Of a stretch of DNA of 64,000 nt, positions 14,201 through 31,198 are shown in pieces. A program made the position numbers and the translations under genes. Source of the DNA: Orbicella franksi (Eukaryota); the NCBI GenBank assembly GCA_964199315.1, contig OZ116712.1, positions 20,832,001 to 20,896,000 of the forward strand. The letters run 5' to 3'. The stretch's first letter is position 1. Each line of letters begins with the position of its first letter. The notes below the pieces were generated by a model that was given only the letters and a program-made list of their open reading frames with translations, searched no databases and had not been told where the DNA came from.

Positions 14201-16571
14201 TGTCAACTTACGATGCCAGAAAGAGCTGACAACGTAACTGCTAGAAAATGTAACACGGAATGTTAGAAGTATTTATCAGTTGATTACAGGTTATCGAAAA
14301 GTCTGGCAGTGTTAAATATTGTGCAAACAAAGAGAATGTTTCAGGAAATTTTCATGACATTTAGGAATGGAACTCGATCTATGCGCCATTACTGAAATAA
14401 GCTTAAAAGAAACAAGGACAACTTTATCAAGGGATCGACTGGTGTGGATTAGTTTCAACAAAAGACTTTGGCGATAAAAACTGTCTGGTCTTCTCAGTCA
14501 CGGAAATTCAAAGTCACGAACTTGTGTTCAAGTTGCAACTCGATTCTCAGTAAAAATTGCGAAATATTTGTCATGCTCAAAACATGCACAGAATTATAAA
14601 AGTCGCATCTTTCTCATTGCGCGAATGTGAGAGAGAAGCAAGAAGCATTATGATTTGTTTTTACACCAAATCTCTTATTTTTTTTTTTATCACTTAGGGT
14701 ACTCTATAAGGAGAAGGTATTTTAAAAAGAACTTCCTGTTGAAATGGAGGCAGACATTTTCATGTTGTAAACCGGAGTATGTTCTACTTTACATTTAAAT
14801 CACTATGAAATTAACGTTTTCTTATGTATTAAAAGTCAGCTTTTGTGCTTAATTCTGCATAGAGGTTAGCTTGTTGGTGACATGACGGACCAAGTAAAAG
14901 CTATTGATCAGACTTTCATGAAAATGTTATACAAGCTCTACCTTTAAGTCTGTGGATGAAACCCTAGGATGTGACCATTCAAATGAAAGCTACTGAGCAG
15001 TACTTTCATGTGGTACTGTTTACTATGCTGTGCAAGGTGGCTCTATCTTTTTTTTGTAAGTCTGTGGATGAAACCCTGGTATGTGACCATTCAAATGAAA
15101 GCTATTGAGCAGTACTTTCATGTGGTACTGTTTATTATGTTGTACAAGGTGATTCTATCTTTTCTTCTAAGTCTGTGGATGAAACCCTAGTGTGTTACCA
15201 TTCAAATGAAAGCTATTGAGCAGCACTTTCATGTGATACCGTTTGTCATGTTGTACAAGGTGGTTCTAACTCTTACGTGTGTGGACGAATGAAAACTCGT
15301 TGAACAACACTTCCCTTTGCCGTTAGTTATTAAAACTTCTGTTAATAATTTGAATCATTGTCGACTGTGACTAGTTTTTCACTTTTATATGTACCAGTAT
15401 TCCACGCAAAACCCGTCACTTAATGTATACAAAACAGGAGTAGCTAAACCTATCTCTTATCTTGCCCATTTTACTTTGAAATAAAACGTAAAGAAGATTA
15501 AGATAAAAATCGCTATAGTTTTTTTTTTCTCTGCTTCTTTGTTACATCAAGCTCGCGGTGGTGTAATGATTTAAAAAATGCGAATAAATTGCGGTAGAAG
15601 ATTGCGTAAATCGTCATTCCCATGGCCAGACAAAAACAATTTTAAAACTTTTAATCCCAGTCGGACGGTTGATACAAGCAGTGGGATAAATCCTGTATCA
15701 CCGGTCTGAACAAAGAAGGCTGTTAGAAGGATTATCCATAGAGGAACGAAGGCATACTCCAGAGTAAATCCGATCAAGATCTGATGAAATATCTCACGCG
15801 AGACTGACAAGTTACGTTGACAGGTGCAATATAGAGATGACTATCTCAAGGCAGTTTTCAGTTTGTTGTATAACTGAGGTTTGGATTGAATTTGTTAAAA
15901 CGACAACTAAAACAAAGTCAATCTTCAATTTTTTTGAAGTCTACCGTTGAATATTAAAAGTACACGTTTATCAGTGCAGTTAAAATAAAATGCAATTTCT
16001 TTGTGTAAGTAGCAATAGTCATATTTTAAGCGCAGTAAGATAATATCGATAAAGCAATCAAAGATTGGTTACGGTGAAATTAGTTTATGCTTCGCTAGCG
16101 GAGATCCTCCGAAGCTTATCCCAGCAATCATCATGACTGACTTTTGTTGTATTTTTACCGTTTTAGGTGTGGTTTAAGAACAGAAGAGCCAAGTGCCGTC
16201 AACTGGACAAAGCCGCCGAAAATAAACGAAAACTCGAGAAGAAATCCTCGCCTGGAACAGTTCCTCCTTCAAAAATCGAGCAAAAGAAATCAAGTCCTTC
16301 GCCTTACCAGCTGCCAAGCTGCAGTGCGAACATCAACAACATATGGCAGAACGGCCCAGCATCGACGCCACTAACACACAGTCAAAATTTCCCAACTCCT
16401 CCCGTGCTGACAAACAATTCTGGTCCGGTGTTCATGCCTCCCCCTCACCCTCCCCCTGCGCCTGCACCTCCGCCGTATTATCGACCAAACTCGGACTGTT
16501 CTTACATGTCGTCACCTTACATGCATATGAACAGGCCTGGCGAGCAGGCTTACCCCCCAACACATATGTAA
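5280..16571 (+). CDS. Otx: Orthodenticle/Otx homeobox transcription factor (PRD class, K50), 3 coding exons, 225 aa
   Basis: Exons 5280-5400 ([19 protein letters not shown]...PPPC, G|gtaag), 10452-10603 (cag|[51 protein letters not shown]|gt) and 16167-16571 (tag|[12 protein letters not shown]...THM*). Phases are 1 and 0 and the total of 678 nt is in frame. [11 protein letters not shown] and [11 protein letters not shown] are diagnostic for Otx. The intron at homeodomain codons 46/47 is the classic PRD-class position. Confidence 0.96.
12713..12862. repeat. Degenerate copy of an interspersed hairpin-type repeat in Otx intron 2
   Basis: Imperfect inverted segments (cgcagttatgtatgtacgtgacttg ... 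ttaagttgcgcacacaactg) resemble a common coral repeat. Recognised from recall, no search run. Confidence 0.35.
14895..15315 (+). repeat. Tandem satellite with a unit of about 112 bp, 3 good copies plus degenerate flanks
   Basis: tgtggatgaaacc recurs at 14951, 15063 and 15174. Each copy is followed by ...accattcaaatgaaagctaytgagcagyactttcatgtg. Confidence 0.9.
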
Positions 16572-18651: not shown

Positions 18652-19110
18652 GATACTTCCATCTAATTAAAACCGCAAAATAGGCCCTTTACCCAAGTTA
18701 GACAGCCAACCAAATAAGCCTTATTTCATTGTCCCTCGGAGCGGACAACCATCTGGTTTAAAATAAAATGATTTTTTTCCCGTCACTTCGTTTGTACGAG
18801 TAGAAACCCATCTAGGTGAGACTGCAGTATACGCTATATTTCATGTCTCCCAGAGTAGACACCCATCTAATTTAGACTACAATATAAGGCCCCTTTTATT
18901 GTGTCTAGGCAGACTCGTACTTCTCGGTCATAAGCAGGGACCCATCTCAGATTAGACTCAACTATAAGCCATAATGTACGCGTTTCTGACCAGACGTCCA
19001 TCTGATCAAGACTACAACAATGGCCCTCTTTTCTTGTGCCTAGACAACCATCAAAAATATTCCGCTGTTCTCCTTGTTCGAGAAGAGACCCATCTAAATA
19101 GGAACGCAAC
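18652..19110 (+). repeat. Degenerate array of RGACNNCCATCT-(N5-6)-AGACT motifs, spacing about 40-60 bp
   Basis: CCATCT at 18659, 18749, 18808, 18863, 18942, 18998 and 19089, plus CCATCA at 19048, all on one strand. Confidence 0.75.
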
Positions 19111-19892
19111 AAAGGTCTGTCCTTTTTCTCAGAAAAGGCCCACAATGCACACGCAATAAGTGGCGCAAGAACTTCTTTGGTCGCAAAAAGACGCAAGCCA
19201 GCAAAAAAGTGAAACTGACGTGTTTTGAGGTTTACCCGCAAGAGCTGTCGAAACGCAAGAAGTTGAAAATTACGCCGCAGGAGCCGGAAGCCGCAAGAAG
19301 CGCAAAAAGGTTACCAGATCCAGCAACACGATGTTTTCTTATCGGATCCCACAGTGACTGCCTACAAATGGCACATGACGCTCTTCAGTCGAATGTTGTG
19401 CTCTTGAACTATTAGATATTGACCAATTCTGGAATTAACATATACAAGCTGTCCGAGTACACAGTATTGCAATATTTGAATAGTGTACCATCTAATCTGG
19501 AATGAAAAATGGTTAGTTCTATCTTTAAATTCTGGGCATGGTTCTTTCATGATCATTTTGGCCGTGTTCGTTTCGAGATTTCTCAACACCGAATTTACCA
19601 GCTCGGCTGAATTACGATGGTGCTCCAGCACGTTTGCGAAATTTGCCCCAATTTGTAAAAGAGGCACGTTTGGACGGTTTTGCGCGCGTTTCACCTGAAG
19701 TGAGCATCAACGACCGCGATGAAAACAGTAACGGAATACTTCTCTAAATGAGCGGGCTAAAACCAAGTGACACGAGTACGGTAGCAGGCTTTGAACTTTA
19801 CCAAAGCGAGCACAAGATTATTTATGAGAGTATTAACAAGAGAATACCGATAAAAGTTAGATGCACCAAGTAATAAATAGTGATGTGTAATT

Positions 19893-22800
19893 TTAGGTGG
19901 TCTTGTTTCTGTTCTTTCTGTGAAAGGAATCCATTCTCTCCTGTTTCTCTCCGCGGCACAGCACACAGCTGTACTTGCTCTTAGTCCTGGCCAGTTGTGC
20001 ATAGGCTTTCTCGTCGATGCCATCACAATCTGTAAATGTAAAATTGTTTGCATGGGTGAAACCAGTAAGCTGATTTGGGGGAAGAAAGCTGCGACTTTCT
20101 TGTGACCGATTTTCAGATTTATCGTCAATTTTGTGTGAAGATTCAACGCCGAAATTCCAAGTTAGGCCTGGTAGACACATCTAACGAAGGGGAAAAGCGG
20201 TTCAATACGTAAATACATCTTTTTTGAAAAACTTCCTACCATGAGGCTGTAGAAGGTGAAGCGTCCCTATTAAGGCTGACGGACGAGACAGATATCGCGT
20301 TTGTACCTGGTCAGTGTTGTATTTTTTGTTCAGTAATAAGTCTTCTACCCATACAACTTCGATGGAAGATGCCACGAAAAACAATCGTTCACAAGCAATA
20401 TGAAAAGATGAAGTAAAAAGGAGATCTTCACGAACCAGTGTCATTAAAAAAGCTGTGTAAAGGTAACTTATCCAAACCTGTGTGGACCCAGCGATCACAC
20501 ATGTCACAGCACACCATAGGCAAGTCAGATTCGTCGTTTCGGTAGACTTTTAAACAAACTGGGCAGAAATTCCCAGCTCTGAATAACCTGTGAGACCAAA
20601 GTGTAAAATATCTAGTTTCACAGTTACTCGCAAATATACTCAAAAGGGCTTAAACTCTTTTTCTACAGTATAATAAATAATACTGCATGCAAGTTAGTGA
20701 TAATGCTTGACAAGTTCCATCCACGTGAGCTATGAGGGACGGACCATTATTTTTAGAGGAGAGGGCGGGGCGGGGGGAGGGAGGGGGGAGTAGGCAATTT
20801 CTAAAAAAAATAATTCCTGCATAGCAAAAACTGCTGAAGAAATAAATCGTGAAAGGGGAGCCATTAAGAAAAAAACATCGAGCAAGTGCTTTTTACTATC
20901 CAGGTCCTGTGTTTGACTTTTAAGAAAATACTTGCACAAGTCATTGTTGAACAAAAAAAATCATAGACAACCTAAAGGTGAGAAAACAACTCATGCCCCA
21001 GAAAATTGTTCACCCCCCTCAAAAAAATAATGGCCCGTCTCTAATCACAGTCCAGATAGTATACTGTAAACAGTTGCATTCTAACTGTTTCTGCTTTACC
21101 TTGAACACGCAGTGCACAGGGTTTGTAAAAACTGCACCTCGGATCCGTCACGCGGCTTGGTGTACTGTGGAGGGGAGAGTAAAGTCAATTAGAAAGGGAA
21201 CGGCAGTCAGGGAGAAGGAAGCAATGCAGGTCGGCCCAGATAACGGCTTTGAAGGAGTGCAACAAACCACTCCCTTACACAAAGGGCTGTTTCAAGAAAG
21301 ATTGTCCTACAAAAGCGTAAAAGCGTATGCGACAATGTCAAAAGGAACATTACTTGCAAAAAAATTTCGGACGATTTCACATTCGGACAAAAAAAGTGTC
21401 CGAAAATAAAACCGTCCGAAAAATTTACAGTACAGTAGAGTATAAAACTTCGAAATAGCTCCAAAGCTCTTAGGTTCCTTTATACCGGGCTTTATGGAGA
21501 GAACTCTCAGTTGTGACACTTTTTTTAAGAAACCACGACGGCGACGCCGAGGACAACGTGGATTAAAAAAATGATTTTATATTTTATCTACGAATCTCGC
21601 GGTACCCAAAAGTCATTTACTTTGTTTATCACTGTCAAAGCCATCACGAAACTGAATCTCGGACACATCGATAAATTCGAAATAAAAGTTCCTGAAATTA
21701 GCCATCGTGGTTCACGTTCTCCAGACAGCGCAGAGTTTGGTCATTTCATTTTGCTGTTTTGCAGAGGACGGCAATGGAATGTACAAAGAATTATAACGCA
21801 CGCGCACAGCCATTGTTCCGCTCATTAAACCTTTTGTTTAGCAACGTTGCCGTTGCCGTTGCCGTCGCGGCTTTCTTAAACTCCCTATTGCTTGACGTAC
21901 GTAACGACCTGATGGAATTTGTTATTTTCTCGTCGGTACATCTCTAAAACCTTGAGGGTGCAGTTAAACGATAATTTTGCCGGATGTTGTTTCAGTCTAA
22001 CTCGTGTTCTGTAGGAGTAAACAAATTTCGCTATGTTTCCGCAGCAAAGGATCTGAAATTGTTTTCCGAATTACGGGTAATGATGGTTCACGACAACACA
22101 CATCACCAATCTTAAAGTTGAGTAGGGAGGACACCTATGCCAATTTCTAATTAGTTCTCATCATCTTTGTTTGTTATCCAGCAAATTGAAATTACAGCTC
22201 TTTAAGATGTACAATGTAAATGAAAACGTTATTTTCTAGAAGATTCATTTCCTTATTCTCATCACCCTGCTGGTTGATAATGTATTGATAGTGTAAGGAG
22301 AAAATTAATGTTGATGAACAAACCTCGTGTTTCCATCTGGAAGTGTTTCCTTCACCTGGCGATCTCCTTAAGCACGAGGCGCACATACCACACATGTCAC
22401 AGGTCCAGCGACCTGGTACAAGAAAAATCACAAACTCTTTATTTAGAAAACAACACACAAAAATAACAACAACATAATTATCATTCACAAACAAGTGATA
22501 CCCATCAAAAGTAACCGTTTCATGAGAAATATTGAAGCACAAGGTATTCTTTTTTTGAGAAATCGACCTCAGAGTGATGTGAATGGTTTGCCTATATGTA
22601 TCTCATTCCCATGGTCAAAAGATTGTACACATAAGCAAAATGTCGACGATTCATTTGTTTACAATAACATTAAAAATTTACCAGCAAATTAAAGAGAAGA
22701 ATAAAGTACTAATTCGCTTATAGGGTGAAAGAAATTTCACACTTCAACCGTATGAAAAGTCGGTAAGTTTTTCGTCGAATATTTTGCCTCAAGTGTTAGA

Positions 22801-25800
22801 ATGATACTGAGCAAAGTCCTAGAAACCAATTTTGTTTTGCAGAAGTCGCAACAGTTTCTCAGAACAGGAAAGACGTTTTCGTAGCATTGTTACATGTAAG
22901 TTTGTAACCTTTTGCATTCAGTGAATTAAATGAAATTTATCACAATACCTTCAACACACTGGAGAGAGAATTACTTCTTAGCCTGCATAGCAAGCGTTCA
23001 GGTACGAAGGGATTTTTCCGCATTCTGGCCGCGCGCAAATTGGAGCTAGAGAAAAAAAATCGACAAGGGAGGGGGTGGTGGGGCGAGCGAGGGAACGTCA
23101 CTCCCTGCTTCGTCGAAGTTTTTGCTCCCGCTCCAATTTGCGCGCGGCCAGAATGCCGCGGAAAAGCTCTTCCGGTATGGGAACGCTTGCTAGATTATTT
23201 ACTTCTCAGTGGCCTTGCAGAAGAAAGCAAAGAAGGTCAAATCCAAGAGTATAGGTATTTTTCCAAGTGCACCGTGTCACTGATACTCACCTACAGGTAT
23301 TTGCTTTAATCCTACACAGAAACTGTGGTATCCACGATCACACTCGTCACAAAATAACATCTTATCCTGTAAACAAACAACTCTTCATTTGAGTACAAAC
23401 GAATAAATTCTGTGATAATTACAGCTTTGCGATTACTGTATACTACCCACAGTCAGGACAGACTAAACAGAGGGGAGATCTCATACAAAAGAGATCTTTT
23501 ACAGATTCGTCAGTGGCTCGTGGGAGGCTGGGGAAGGGACAACAGGGAGGGACGGGGGTATAGCAAAAAAGGACTTGCATAGATGCTGCATTGATTACCC
23601 GAATACCCGAATCAATTACATAATACACAACAAATGAAACCTACGTACACGTACATGTGTGTGTCTCGAGTTCCTTGTATCAGATTACAAACTACAGTCG
23701 AACCCTATAAAGCAGCCACCTATTAAACGGCCACCCCTTTTAGGCGGCCAGTAATCAAAGTCCCGATGAGGTTTTTCTATTGTTTTTACCTCTTTTAAGC
23801 GGCCACTATCCATTTCTCCAAGGGTGGCCGTTTAATAGGGGTGGAACTGTACGTAGCAACTATGGTTTTATTCCTCAATTAATATTTTGAGGACAATAAT
23901 AATTACCTCATCAAATGGATCTCTACAGATGATGCAAGTCTTGCACTCCATGCACTGCCAGGGATAAGTTTGGATCACAGCAACCAGCTGGGTGTTCATG
24001 TCCAGACATGATGGGTGACCTGTGCAAACATACAAGTAAATGACCTTGGTTTCTTGCCAGCGTATAGCTGGTTTTTACACAACTTAAAATTTCAAAACGG
24101 AAAAAAATGTAACAGTTATAAACAACACCACAAGAGGCAAAGTGCAGATCTATTTATTGACTATCACGTGTGCTTGTGAACATTAGGATTACATTACACT
24201 ACACAGATGGACATGCACAACACCATCATCTACATGCACATAAGTACATTTATTGTTTTCCAAGAGGGCACGGTAACAAATCCTGCAATCTGATTGGTTG
24301 TTAGCGTGGTCCAGATTTTCAAGTCCAATCTCTGACCACAGTCACGTAAGCCGCATACGATGTGTGTGTGGAAAAGGTCATCAATTATAACAGTGATTTG
24401 AGAGAGAAAGGAAAAAATGAATTGGTTATTTACTGTCTTAGGGTTGGTCTGTTTTGTGAAAAACTGTGACCTCAGACTTGAAAATGCACAGTTTTTCACC
24501 ATACAGACCTCCTAGCTGACAAATATAACGTAATATGCACATGATGGCATAGTGCCTACAACATTTTAGGTACAAAATTGGACATACCACTGTTTTCGCA
24601 TTGTGAGCAGTGTATAAGATCCTCCTGCAATCCTTTCTTGTTTGTATCAGGGCCTTTCAAGCATATACCACAAACAGCATCAGGGCGTTTTGGTGGCTGT
24701 GGAGATAAATGGTAATACATTAACATTGTATAAACACACTTATTACTGGAACCTAATTATCTTCAAAGAAGATCAGTTTGTGGGCTACTAGAATCTTTCA
24801 TTTACAAATGTTTCAATAAAATGGACCAAATCCGTCTTGTACTTAAAAATACTGCTGAGGACTGCAAATCCTCCTCTCTGGATGGAAACAAAACTCTCTG
24901 AAGTTACTTGATAACACATGGACAAATTGCAATGTCAATGTTGTTTTTATTGTGTGTGTTAAGAGTCTCTGCACATGCTACATGTATACCCAAGACTTCA
25001 ACATGAGGATGCTGACAAGGCTTCAAACATAGCTTGACTGTCTTGGACAGATAACAATCCTCACAAACGCTTAGATCAGGACTGCCATGGTTTGGACAAA
25101 AATTTCAGCACTATGCAGTCAGCACCTAAGGAGAAGCTTACTCTTTTCGTAAACAAGCATTGCATCTCTCAGGCTACCCCCAAAGACAGAAATATCTGAT
25201 AGCATTTATGTTGCACATACATTGTATCATTATGATTGCCCAATGACCAAAGACAAACAAATTACACTGTAGGGAGAGGAATTGATGTTAAGTGAGAAGA
25301 CCCCAGAGGTGGCGAGGGGGGGGGGGGGGACACTCCAATATAAAAAGGAGGGGGGTGCTCATCGGAAATTTTGAAAAGAACCCCTAACAGGTACCAAGAT
25401 CCTGTTTTCTGGGTGTGGCATTTTTTTTTCACCCTAAAGAGGTACCAATTCTAAAACAGTACATTATTTCCTGCTATAATTTTTTGGCAAAATACCCTAT
25501 AAGGTACCACAAAAGCTTTCCCTGTGGAGCTTTTGAGGCTCAACACTCTAAGAGGTACCAAAATTACTTTTTCAAGCCCTAAAAGGTACAACAAGCACCC
25601 CTGTCCTTTTTCTATGGTTCTCCCCCCCCCCCCCCCCCCCTCTCCAGAAGAAGACAAACATCTGCGGGAAACACACTGGTATGCATCTAGTTCATCTTGT
25701 ATGATTGTCTGGGTGAGGGTACCTGTAGTTCTATAAAAGAATTGTTGTTGGTAACTGATGTTTCGACAATTGGAAATCACCTTCAGAGTCAGGTGAATAG

Positions 25801-28776: not shown

Positions 28777-31198
28777 CAACAACAACAAACAAACAAGAAA
28801 TAAAATTAATGGAATTGTCACTTTATATCTCACCTGATATTTTTTCGGAAAGCCATCGATCATAAGTTGACAGATATCCTCTGTCTTGTATGCCACTAAT
28901 TCTATGTGTAAGAGGCAAATGATAATAATATTAACACTAGCCACCTTCTCTGAGTTCATGAAACTTAAAGGAGAACAATTTTGGGTCACATTTGTCTATA
29001 TTGGGCAGGGCAGGGTTCAATTGAAAATTTTAACTGGAAGATCAATTTGTACAAATATGTTGATGTCACTGTCTCAATTCTGATAGGCTAAAGGCACCCA
29101 GCTAATAATTTTTATTGGTGGCACTGTTTTGTTACATCATATCTCAGGATAGCATGTAAAGAAGTGACAGGGATTTAAAACTAGTCCCTGGTACTTATGG
29201 AGAACTCTGCGTTAGTGCAAAAGTACATTGTACGTAATGCATGGGTTTTCCCATGTTTTTAATATCAGTAGTTTCACAATATGTACAATCTACATATACA
29301 CAGAAGAAGAGGATTCCAAATAGTTTACAAGAATTATTTGTATATGTACCTTGAATTTCATCTGTGATAATCCCTTTTTCTTTGACATATAGTTTCTCGT
29401 CTTCTGCTATGATATGCTTTTCCAGATCTGAACATAAAAATATCAATGACTTCACGAGAGCCATGTCACAGGGAACAATAATATTATCTTATTTTAAAAA
29501 AATCACACACAACATTCTGTACATAGCTTCTCATTCCTTCTTCTACATGTACAGCAAGGCGCAATTTGTGCATTCCAGGGGAGGGGGGGGGGTACTCCCA
29601 GAAAAATTGGGTGGGGCTGTCCCGCCTGTTTCCAGAAACCCTTACCCTATTAATTTTATGACCAAAATCTGCTATTTCCCCTACCCTGCTTATGACCAGA
29701 CCAAAAATTTGATACCCTGTGAATGGCTGTTGTGGATGGCACAGTTGCCCTAAAAATAATTTATGAAGGGCTTTTGTTGATGGTCTTATTAATAATGATG
29801 AAAAAGTAGCTCCCTCTAAAAAACATACTTAATTCAAGACTTAAGAGCAAAAACCATACCCTAGTTTATGACCAAAATGGCTAAAAACCATACTGTTTGG
29901 GGCCACCCATATCTATTTAGTACCCCCCCCCCCCCCTGGTGTGTGCATTCAACACGGTACAGTAAATTAAACCCATAAAATACTTGAAAGAGTTGGGACA
30001 AGGACATTGCAAATGAAGACCACTGAGCACTTGCCTGGATATTTCTCTTCAAGACTTTCAATTTCTAAGAACTGACAAACTTGATGTCGGAGTACATAAA
30101 ACTCTCCTGTCCGGTCAGGGGGCCATTGGTATTCAAGCATTCTCTCAGCTGAAAAGGACTCTGGACCAGTTTCTGGGGTAGAGGGCTGGGGAGCTTGTTT
30201 GTCCACTGTTTCACTCGTGAGTTTGGCATTACATGTATTTTGATCATTTGTTAAATTCTCCTGTTGCTGTTCCTCTTGTGTTTCATTTTCTGTAGAGGCT
30301 TTTGGTTCCTTTGATACTGCTGTCTTTCTCTACAAAATTAATGAAATGACTAATGAGTAAATGAACAATTATATGGCTTCCTACAAGTGCATGTATCAGT
30401 ATGCTATATTAGAAAACAGCCCTAAGAAAATACACCCGCTGATTGGTTAAGAATCATGTTTGCATAACTTGATGGAAACATAGAATTAGCATGAGCTGTT
30501 GACGCACATGCAAAGAGAATTTACATTTTGATAATCAAAGTAAACAAGCTTTTTTCCTTTTTTCGTCATGGTGTTTTCTAAAACAAATAGAAAACATGTT
30601 TTCCGTGTTTCTATTGAGTTATAGAAACACTCGTGAAAGCTTGGGAGAACTAGAAAAAGCTGTGGAAACACTTGCCTGCGACTTGTGTTCCCACAGCATT
30701 TCTTGTTCTCCCAAACTTCCACTCATGTTTCTATAACTCAATAAAAACACTGTACATGTTTTCTATTTCTTAAATGACAACAAGTGACAGGATTATGAAA
30801 GGTTATGGATGGTTTTGATAGACACAGTACGTGTATAATTTTGAATATATCTATCTTTCCTAAAATGCATATCTTTAATTATTATATCCTTCATGGCAAG
30901 AGACACATCTTCCTACAAAAAATCGAATTTAAACCCCCAAGCTTTGTTCTATTCTAAAGGCCAAAAGGCAAAATTTCTGTCACTATGGAAGCCTCTCCTC
31001 TCCTTACTGTAAATGGTAATAATTTAATATATGGTAAGCCTCAAAGCAAGACTGGATATATTATGTATTAAGTGTTAGTTGTAATCTTACTTCTAGTAAT
31101 GTAATTTTTTTAACCTTGCATTTTGCAGTGAAAGTGATGTAAGTAATGTTTTGATAATAATAAAATGTTGGGAAAAAAATAAAAAATAAAAAAATAAA

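Follow-up and report, generated by a model that had tools for sequence, protein, structure and literature searches.

Does the PHF10 gene of the coral Orbicella franksi end after its double PHD finger (DPF), or does it encode a third finger, and where would such a finger come from? PHF10 is a reader subunit of PBAF-type SWI/SNF remodellers and ties PBAF to chromatin marks. To our knowledge, all functional work on PHF10 has concerned the two-finger proteins of vertebrates and flies. Reviews describe the metazoan SMARCG subunits, to which PHF10 belongs, as two-fingered (PMC8538644, PMC9170682). In the present study, we analyzed a window of 64,000 nucleotides (GenBank assembly GCA_964199315.1, contig OZ116712.1, positions 20,832,001 to 20,896,000 of the forward strand). 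A sequence-only reading of this window, made without database searches, had claimed that PHF10 carries an extra Cys4 linker and a third PHD finger (PHD3) resembling those of KMT2A/MLL1, either as an ancestral state lost in vertebrates or as a lineage-specific fusion. Our results suggested that this is the three-finger 3' end of coral PHF10, that the cassette of two PHD fingers, Cys4 knuckle and third PHD finger is ancestral to SMARCG and neither a coral invention nor a piece of KMT2A, and that PHD3 was deleted in Bilateria. We assign this reading a probability of about 0.85.

The gene was reconstructed on the minus strand by peptide look-ups and boundary read-outs, which yielded 16 coding exons and 571 residues from the initiator ATG to the TAA stop (Table 1). 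All introns had AG acceptors and GT donors, except for GC donors after exons 1 and 2. The two GC-AG introns have the same donor sequence (CAG/GCAAGT at 30676 and 30035), and the same borders were found in the Orbicella model. The last four exons, here called A to D, had compatible phases (1/0, 0/2, 2/1 and 1/stop), and translation of the spliced model showed that the concatenated exons form an open frame throughout. Without exon 1, the model matched, at 98.6% identity over 554 residues, the protein P0159, 'PHD finger protein 10-like isoform X4' of Orbicella faveolata, which serves as the citable reference for the PHF10 protein of the window. A tblastn search with P0159 revealed 8 residue differences, all before model residue 300 and N-terminal of the fingers; the fingers themselves were identical. 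Full-length homologues from corals to mammals carry the name PHF10.

The domain order of the coral protein is SAY, DPF, Cys4 zinc knuckle and a third C4HC3 PHD finger. The SAY domain, encoded by exons 2-8, was recovered by jackhmmer at E 1e-104 for P0159; with this profile, PHF10 of mouse and of birds gave a value of about 1e-104. The DPF fold was supported by superposition of an AlphaFold2 model on the DPF structures of DPF3, MOZ, MORF and DPF2, with template modelling (TM) scores by target of 0.78-0.90, root-mean-square deviations of 1.5-2.3 Å and 41-47% identity. Beyond the DPF, the protein continues for 125 residues, and its C-terminus lies 20 residues past PHD3. Pfam recognized three PHD stretches in P0159. 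The exon C peptide alone scored 24.5 bits against the PHD cut-off of 24 (PF00628), and the other single-exon peptides, being too short, gave no Pfam match. A region-limited word search with the tail returned 27 proteins, all cnidarian or holozoan; this search was word-limited and was not taken as evidence of absence. The tails of other scleractinians were 90-96% identical to that of the coral, and those of other cnidarians 61-81%; an ichthyosporean still reached 62%. These values exclude a chance origin of the tail. These results demonstrated that the four extra exons are the genuine 3' end of coral PHF10 (BAF45a, SMARCG family).

RNA was examined over positions 19000-24900 in two contig sets (X1 and X8; Logan contigs) and two raw polyA runs, all from runs labelled as coral metagenome or with coded coral organisms. 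RNA of three studies contained all six joints from PHD1 to the last exon (24586/24017, 23906/23365, 23289/22410, 22324/21164, 21098/20585 and 20478/20029), at the expected bases and with CT..AC ends, which read GT..AG on the minus strand. The joints were supported by contigs of X1 and X8 and by 3-6 raw polyA split reads of X23 each, with only one X23 read at 24586/24017. An 828-nt contig (X8 record 12) covered the exons PHD1a, PHD1b/2a, A and B, and the record numbering left exactly the PHD2b exon between them. The sequence-only reading had named transcripts that stop or splice out before position 22412 as the finding that would speak against it. No such stop was observed, since the joints run on through exon D. 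The peptide that it had quoted is encoded exactly on the minus strand, and the extra linker and third finger of PHF10 thus proved real.

The third finger was compared with solved structures. The 36 residues of exon C alone matched MLL1 PHD3 best (E 4e-8), followed by KMT2C (2e-3), and the whole tail also matched MLL1 PHD3 best (2e-11), followed by DIDO1 (9e-7) and Pygo2 (4e-5). The best single-finger fold match of the tail was again MLL PHD3 (2kyu), with 40% identity in the fold alignment and a TM score by target of 0.67; no single solved entry covered the whole three-finger module in the fold search. MLL1 PHD3 reads di- and trimethylated lysine 4 of histone H3 (H3K4me2/3) and binds the RRM of Cyp33. 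Its cage consists of Tyr1576, Tyr1581, Met1585 and Trp1594 (PMC8022399), and the cages of H3K4me3-reading PHD fingers contain two to four aromatic residues, of which Trp is invariable (PMC3241642). The coral residues at these four positions are Tyr, Ser, Met and Trp. Alignment A1 comprised 35 sequences from animals, choanoflagellates, fungi and plants (five plant sequences), in which all three fingers aligned. The four knuckle cysteines were present in 35/35, and the eight C4HC3 ligands of PHD3 were invariant except for one His at the last position. The cage Met and the cage Trp were each found in 35/35 sequences and the cage Tyr in 33/35, the other two having Trp and Phe. AlphaFold2 run on A1 for residues 338-571 gave a mean predicted local distance difference test score (pLDDT) of 90.6 and a predicted TM score (pTM) of 0.76, with pLDDT values of 88-95 over PHD3.

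An exhaustive phmmer search with exon C over 1.84 billion representatives returned 194 hits at E up to 1e-3. One entry of this list, P0023 (3256 aa, with SprB repeats), was a composition artefact and was disregarded. Profiles of SAY, DPF and tail were then run over all 265 fetched proteins. Many of these carried SAY, DPF, knuckle and PHD3 in that order, and the carriers were found in Cnidaria (Orbicella, Acropora, Actinostola and Hydra), sponges (Sycon and Halichondria), choanoflagellates (Didymoeca, Diaphanoeca, Bicosta and two Salpingoeca species), Ichthyosporea (Amoebidium), chytrids and their relatives (Clydaea, Chytriomyces, Gonapodya and Spizellomyces), and Glomeromycota and Mucoromycota (Racocetra, Cetraspora and Bifiguratus). 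The coral SAY profile matched the choanoflagellate proteins upstream of the fingers at E 1e-22 to 1e-52, and the fungal Rsc7/Swp82-PHD proteins, likewise upstream, more weakly at E 1e-5 to 1e-18; the matches outside animals include P0034, P0024, P0136, P0129 and P0056. The chytrid protein also bears the CRC_subunit domain of Rsc7/Swp82 (Pfam). Plant proteins (from Stephania and others) and several KMT2-like SET-domain proteins had the block of two PHD fingers, knuckle and PHD finger without SAY. Two further proteins were recorded during this survey. P0047 (L001:1001-2593) is PHF10-like and encoded without introns; its 530 residues comprise SAY, DPF, a linker of greater length and PHD3. A UCH (Peptidase_C12) gene adjoins it on a 760-kb ENA metagenome contig, and the protein forms a long branch near the demosponges. 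P0041 groups with Hydra in the trees.

The distribution of tail-less proteins was examined in a tree of SAY plus DPF (36 rows). All tail-less proteins but two fell into one clade (Shimodaira-Hasegawa-like approximate likelihood ratio test 91), which contains ten named bilaterians: mouse, Callorhinchus, Branchiostoma, two hemichordates, Ixodes, Tachypleus, a spider, Priapulus and Pecten. Outside this clade fell a Nematostella isoform, the sequence of which becomes divergent beyond the first knuckle CxxC, and a Corticium model, which ends 7 residues past the DPF. The former (P0177, isoform X2 of Nematostella vectensis PHF10) is annotated as a short isoform and has an unrelated Pro-rich stretch of 15 residues directly after that CxxC; Actinostola, a relative of Nematostella, has the full tail. 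When the C-termini were read, PHD3 was absent from PHF10 in 10/10 named bilaterians. In the chelicerates and Priapulus, the entire Cys4 knuckle is kept and the protein ends a few basic residues past the second CxxC, the point at which the coral gene has its exon B/C border; from the deuterostomes and the scallop, the knuckle is absent too. Mouse and Callorhinchus PHF10 end 20 residues after the DPF, in agreement with the earlier claim that vertebrate PHF10 stops soon after the double finger. In an AFDB search, entries named PHF10 aligned only to model residues 1-109 up to 1-157, and several unnamed or PHD-type entries aligned through about 220. Since Ecdysozoa retain the knuckle, the bilaterian loss was stepwise. 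The simplest reading of these sequences starts from an ancestral three-finger protein, from which PHD3 would have disappeared either in the bilaterian stem or through early, repeated losses, and the knuckle at a later time.

The relation of the finger to KMT2 was analyzed with a tree of linker plus PHD3 (54 rows, 120 columns). The holozoan PHF10 tails, including that of the coral, formed one clade (89/88); the fungal tails formed another (95/94), as did five of the six plant tails (99/92). Human MLL1 PHD3 sat elsewhere, among SET proteins. In an approximately unbiased (AU) test, forcing the animal tails together with MLL1 PHD3 cost 53 log-likelihood units (p-AU 0.0006). The rejection of this grouping by tree and test means that the 'KMT2A-like' character is a paralogous resemblance and not an origin. 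KMT2-type methyltransferases would hold a paralogous cassette of two PHD fingers, knuckle and PHD finger, and this would account for MLL1 PHD3 being the solved structure closest to the coral finger. The claims of the sequence-only reading can be judged accordingly. The likeness to KMT2A/MLL1 held as nearest solved sequence but not as a grouping with KMT2 PHD3. Its parallel with the PHD2-linker-PHD3 region was borne out to the extent that the Cys4 pattern recurs in the KMT2-like SET proteins P0081 and P0106, the only comparison made. The Tyr, Met and Trp that it regarded as a retained cage are identical in the MLL1 alignment, and the fourth residue, Tyr1581, is replaced by Ser. An ancestral three-finger state was favoured, but the loss spans all sampled Bilateria and not vertebrates only; the option of a lineage-specific fusion failed, with the same architecture present in sponges, choanoflagellates, Amoebidium and fungi.

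Based on these results, we propose the following course. The cassette of two PHD fingers, knuckle and PHD finger would be the ancestral SMARCG state. Together with the SAY region, it would have been retained in cnidarians, sponges, choanoflagellates, the ichthyosporean and early-branching fungi (there with the CRC domain of Rsc7/Swp82), and the cassette alone would also have been retained in plant TPF-like proteins. In Bilateria, PHD3 would have been deleted at a point matching the coral exon B/C border; ecdysozoans would have kept the knuckle, and deuterostomes and a scallop would have lost it as well. As for function, the DPF may read acylated H3K14, as in DPF3 and MOZ, judging from the titles of the solved structures, and PHD3 might read methylated H3K4 through its invariant Trp and Met and nearly invariant Tyr. 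The two marks together would draw non-bilaterian PBAF to active promoters.

Several points weigh against parts of this reading. The absence of PHD3 in bilaterians rests on gene models, on ten named species and on AFDB rows, and xenacoelomorphs, placozoans and ctenophores lie outside the sample. The grouping used in the AU test was picked after the tree had been seen, and the backbone of the tree was not resolved (support 14/0), so that a common origin of the SMARCG and KMT2 cassettes is no more than a possibility. The position of MLL1 Tyr1581 is Ser in the coral and S, T, D, E, N and similar residues in the family, never aromatic in A1; the cage is therefore shallower than that of MLL1. A near-identical AFDB entry superposed on the model at a TM score of only 0.63, which makes the orientation between the fingers uncertain. 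Binding of methylated H3K4 by PHD3 is predicted from the cage residues and from knowledge of the family, and we consider the chances of it about even. Finally, contigs of X8 enter the B/C intron on both sides, record 12 coming from exon B and reaching 20971 and record 10 coming from exon C and reaching 20831, and no spliced contig joining exons B and C was kept in X8. Read-through of the exon B donor would give ...CSR followed immediately by TAA, ending the protein just past the knuckle as in ecdysozoan PHF10. A knuckle-only isoform lacking PHD3 may be common in some samples, and retention of the B/C intron (21100-20587) may be a regulated event.

These X8 contigs, together with the short Nematostella isoform P0177, are what would be expected if the main product ended after the knuckle through B/C intron retention and the three-finger protein were a minor isoform. 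We regard this as unlikely. The spliced B/C form is present as an X1 contig at a depth of 43, and 6 raw split reads of X23 cross the B/C joint, as against 3-5 at the neighbouring joints; repeats within the B/C intron inflate its depth; and PHD3 is strongly constrained, with 0 differences from Orbicella as against 8 in the N-terminal part. A more radical proposal would assign the four exons to another gene downstream or to a read-through chimera, outside the PHF10 protein. It can draw only on the long, repeat-bearing introns (0.45-1.2 kb), and we give it hardly any weight. Split reads and contigs connect PHD2b to exon A and onward in three studies, and the intronless P0047 gene and the transcriptome-derived choanoflagellate proteins hold all modules in one frame. 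A separate gene is further disfavoured because PHD2 is incomplete without exon A, whose first 8 codons contain its last CxxC.

If the tail is accepted as part of PHF10, its source and its ligand have to be considered. Capture of the PHD2-linker-PHD3 region of KMT2A/Trithorax onto the end of PHF10 in a coral or cnidarian ancestor would account for MLL1 PHD3 being the best solved-structure match. This origin is extremely improbable: the same arrangement stands behind the SAY region in sponges, choanoflagellates, Amoebidium and fungi, the groups of the tail tree are those of the organisms, with MLL1 PHD3 apart (AU p 0.0006), and the position of Tyr1581, which is Tyr or Phe in most SET-protein fingers, is never aromatic in SMARCG tails. 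A weightier alternative accepts PHD3 as real and ancestral and holds that it is not a reader of H3K4me2/3; its ligand would then be unmodified H3, a different surface of the histones or a partner other than a histone, or the finger would brace the DPF structurally within PBAF. One wall of the MLL1 cage (Tyr1581) is indeed missing, knuckle and PHD3 were predicted with high confidence as a single unit with the DPF (pTM 0.76), bilaterians manage without PHD3, and fingers of such cassettes vary in ligand, with MLL3 PHD6 binding H4 and MLL4 PHD2/3 binding ASXL2 according to the titles of the structure entries. The conservation of the cage speaks the other way, as Trp and Met are invariant and Tyr nearly so across animals, fungi and plants, and so does the occupancy of plant TPF, the peaks of which coincide with H3K4me3-rich 5' ends (PMC9561266). 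We therefore treat a different ligand as a serious possibility, though not the one that we would favour.

The ancestral three-finger reading can be extended further, and here we are tentative, considering the extended proposal as a whole possible but somewhat doubtful. The DPF, knuckle and PHD3 may constitute one ancient reader of two marks, acylated H3K14 and methylated H3K4, present in SMARCG and, as a paralogous copy, in KMT2. PHF10 would then target non-bilaterian PBAF to H3K4me promoters, and PBAF recruitment might have been rewired at the origin of Bilateria when the bilaterian stem was deprived of the last two exons and deuterostomes subsequently lost the knuckle; SAY would predate animals, in contrast to what has been published. 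The analysis points to early-branching animals and their unicellular relatives having kept an MLL1-PHD3-like finger with a conserved, predicted methyl-lysine cage, to one cassette shared by animal, fungal and plant SMARCG proteins, and to the bilaterian state as a stepwise truncation. This provides a concrete, testable model for a change in remodeller targeting during animal evolution, for which natural three-, two-and-a-half- and two-finger versions of PHF10 are on hand for comparison. We regard it as an incremental advance and not as a new kind of system.

Table 1. Coding exons and 3' untranslated region (UTR) of PHF10, in positions of the window.
Feature	Position	Strand	Remark
Exon 1, coding part	30726-30676	(-)	ATG at 30726; GC donor; N-terminus matches P0159
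Exon 2: acidic/polar N-terminal region and start of SAY domain (EYQWPPD...)	30329-30035	(-)	GC donor
Exons 3-9: remaining SAY domain and acidic linker	29427-29350, 28901-28834, 28325-28260, 27833-27705, 27301-27192, 26479-26347, 25949-25863	(-)	
Exons 10-12: DPF, finished by first 8 codons of exon A; fold match to DPF3/MOZ/MORF DPF with TM by target 0.86 and 44% identity	24696-24588, 24019-23907, 23366-23291	(-)	
Exon A: last CxxC of PHD2 (GRWTCDMC), first knuckle CxxC (GMCASC), PG..W.HE motif, up to WKHE	22412-22324	(-)	
Exon B: YTKPRDG to LCTACS, second knuckle CxxC	21164-21100	(-)	
Exon C: first half of PHD3, LFRAGNFC to CDRWVHT (C-x2-C, cage Tyr, cage Met, C-x2-C, cage Trp, His)	20587-20478	(-)	
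Exon D: second half of PHD3 from DCDGIDEK (C ... C-x2-C), conserved RGE..ER...FH tail, TAA stop 19895-19893	20029-19893	(-)	
3' UTR, at least this far	19892-19000	(-)	Unbroken RNA contigs from exon D to the end of the stretch examined (X1 record 1, X8 record 8)

Several features of the neighbouring sequence were also recorded. On the plus strand, an open reading frame at 16167-16571 encodes the C-terminal part of a homeodomain and, behind it, a Pro-rich tail. This frame forms the final exon of an Otx-like gene convergent with PHF10. One contig of 3898 nt (X1 record 1) extends from exon D to about 2.8 kb beyond 19000, and the 3' ends of the two genes may thus overlap. Within the PHF10 introns, the stretches 21364-21954, 23728-23924 and 24122-24318 exceeded the exons in RNA word depth by a factor of 10 to 100 (maximum 6133 in X1; about 145 per strand in the raw reads of X23). 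These stretches had many loose ends and fixed differences, and they look like copies of dispersed repeats that are transcribed elsewhere. In the intron between PHD2b and exon A, a near-perfect inverted repeat with arms of about 32 bases (ttccgcattctggccgcgcgcaaattggagc and its complement) was found at about 23016-23165. An 'opposite strands' joint at 23059/23119 in X8 falls on it, and it looks like a hairpin element of the miniature inverted-repeat transposable element type.

Previously, Hernandez-Garcia et al. (2022, PMC9170682) grouped DPF/PHF10 with fungal Swp82/Rsc7 and plant TPF1/2 under the name SMARCG, the plant proteins being called after their three fingers. In that study, which sampled no cnidarian or choanoflagellate, the subunits of metazoans are given as '2x tandem PHD', and SAY is confined to metazoans. 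A review of PHF10 and DPF evolution mentions neither a third finger nor cnidarians nor MLL (PMC8538644), and our literature search found nothing on a third PHD finger in PHF10. Novelty is reduced by the earlier description of triple-PHD SMARCG subunits from plants (TPF1/2, PMC9170682). Proteins of this kind are known, and the gene models are public. As far as we searched, the new elements are a PHF10 with three fingers in non-bilaterian animals and unicellular holozoans, its truncation by steps in Bilateria, matches to SAY in proteins from outside animals and the specific likeness to MLL1 PHD3.

In comparison with known systems, vertebrate PHF10/BAF45a is orthologous to the coral protein, with SAY at about 1e-104 and DPF at about 1e-38 in the same jackhmmer profiles and the same domain order. 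It ends 20 residues after the DPF, whereas coral PHF10 continues for 125 residues with the Cys4 knuckle and PHD3; the extra tail is an architectural difference and not a difference of orthology. Drosophila SAYP presumably has two fingers. Ecdysozoan PHF10 (Ixodes, Tachypleus, spiders and Priapulus) has SAY, DPF and a Cys4 knuckle with the PG..QW.HE and LC..C motifs, and PHD3 is absent. The homologues of Rsc7/Swp82 in fungi outside Dikarya, annotated as Rsc7/Swp82-domain proteins or even as PHF10 (Clydaea), have an SAY-like stretch, DPF, knuckle and PHD3 in the coral order; they differ in an N-terminal CRC_subunit domain, a longer linker and a tail clade of their own.

Plant TPF1/TPF2, the SMARCG subunits of MINU-type SWI/SNF, share the same cassette with the same invariant Cys and His residues and the same Tyr, Met and Trp as the coral, although in the plant sequences the loop that precedes the cage Met has one residue fewer. 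Unlike coral PHF10, plant TPF lacks SAY and adds a C-terminal Tudor-like domain, which has been described as plant-specific (PMC9170682). Plant proteins of the P0044 type are probably TPF orthologues, as suggested by their architecture and by an Arabidopsis AFDB hit. The nearest solved finger is PHD3 of KMT2A/MLL1 (2kyu, 3lqh/3lqi/3lqj), in which Y1576, M1585 and W1594 are conserved in the coral, and the Cys4 linker pattern also occurs in the KMT2-like SET proteins P0081 and P0106. Coral PHF10 differs from KMT2A in belonging to another subfamily of the tree, in having Ser for Tyr1581 and in lacking a bromodomain behind the finger, where the protein ends; it is a predicted subunit of a remodeller and not a methyltransferase.

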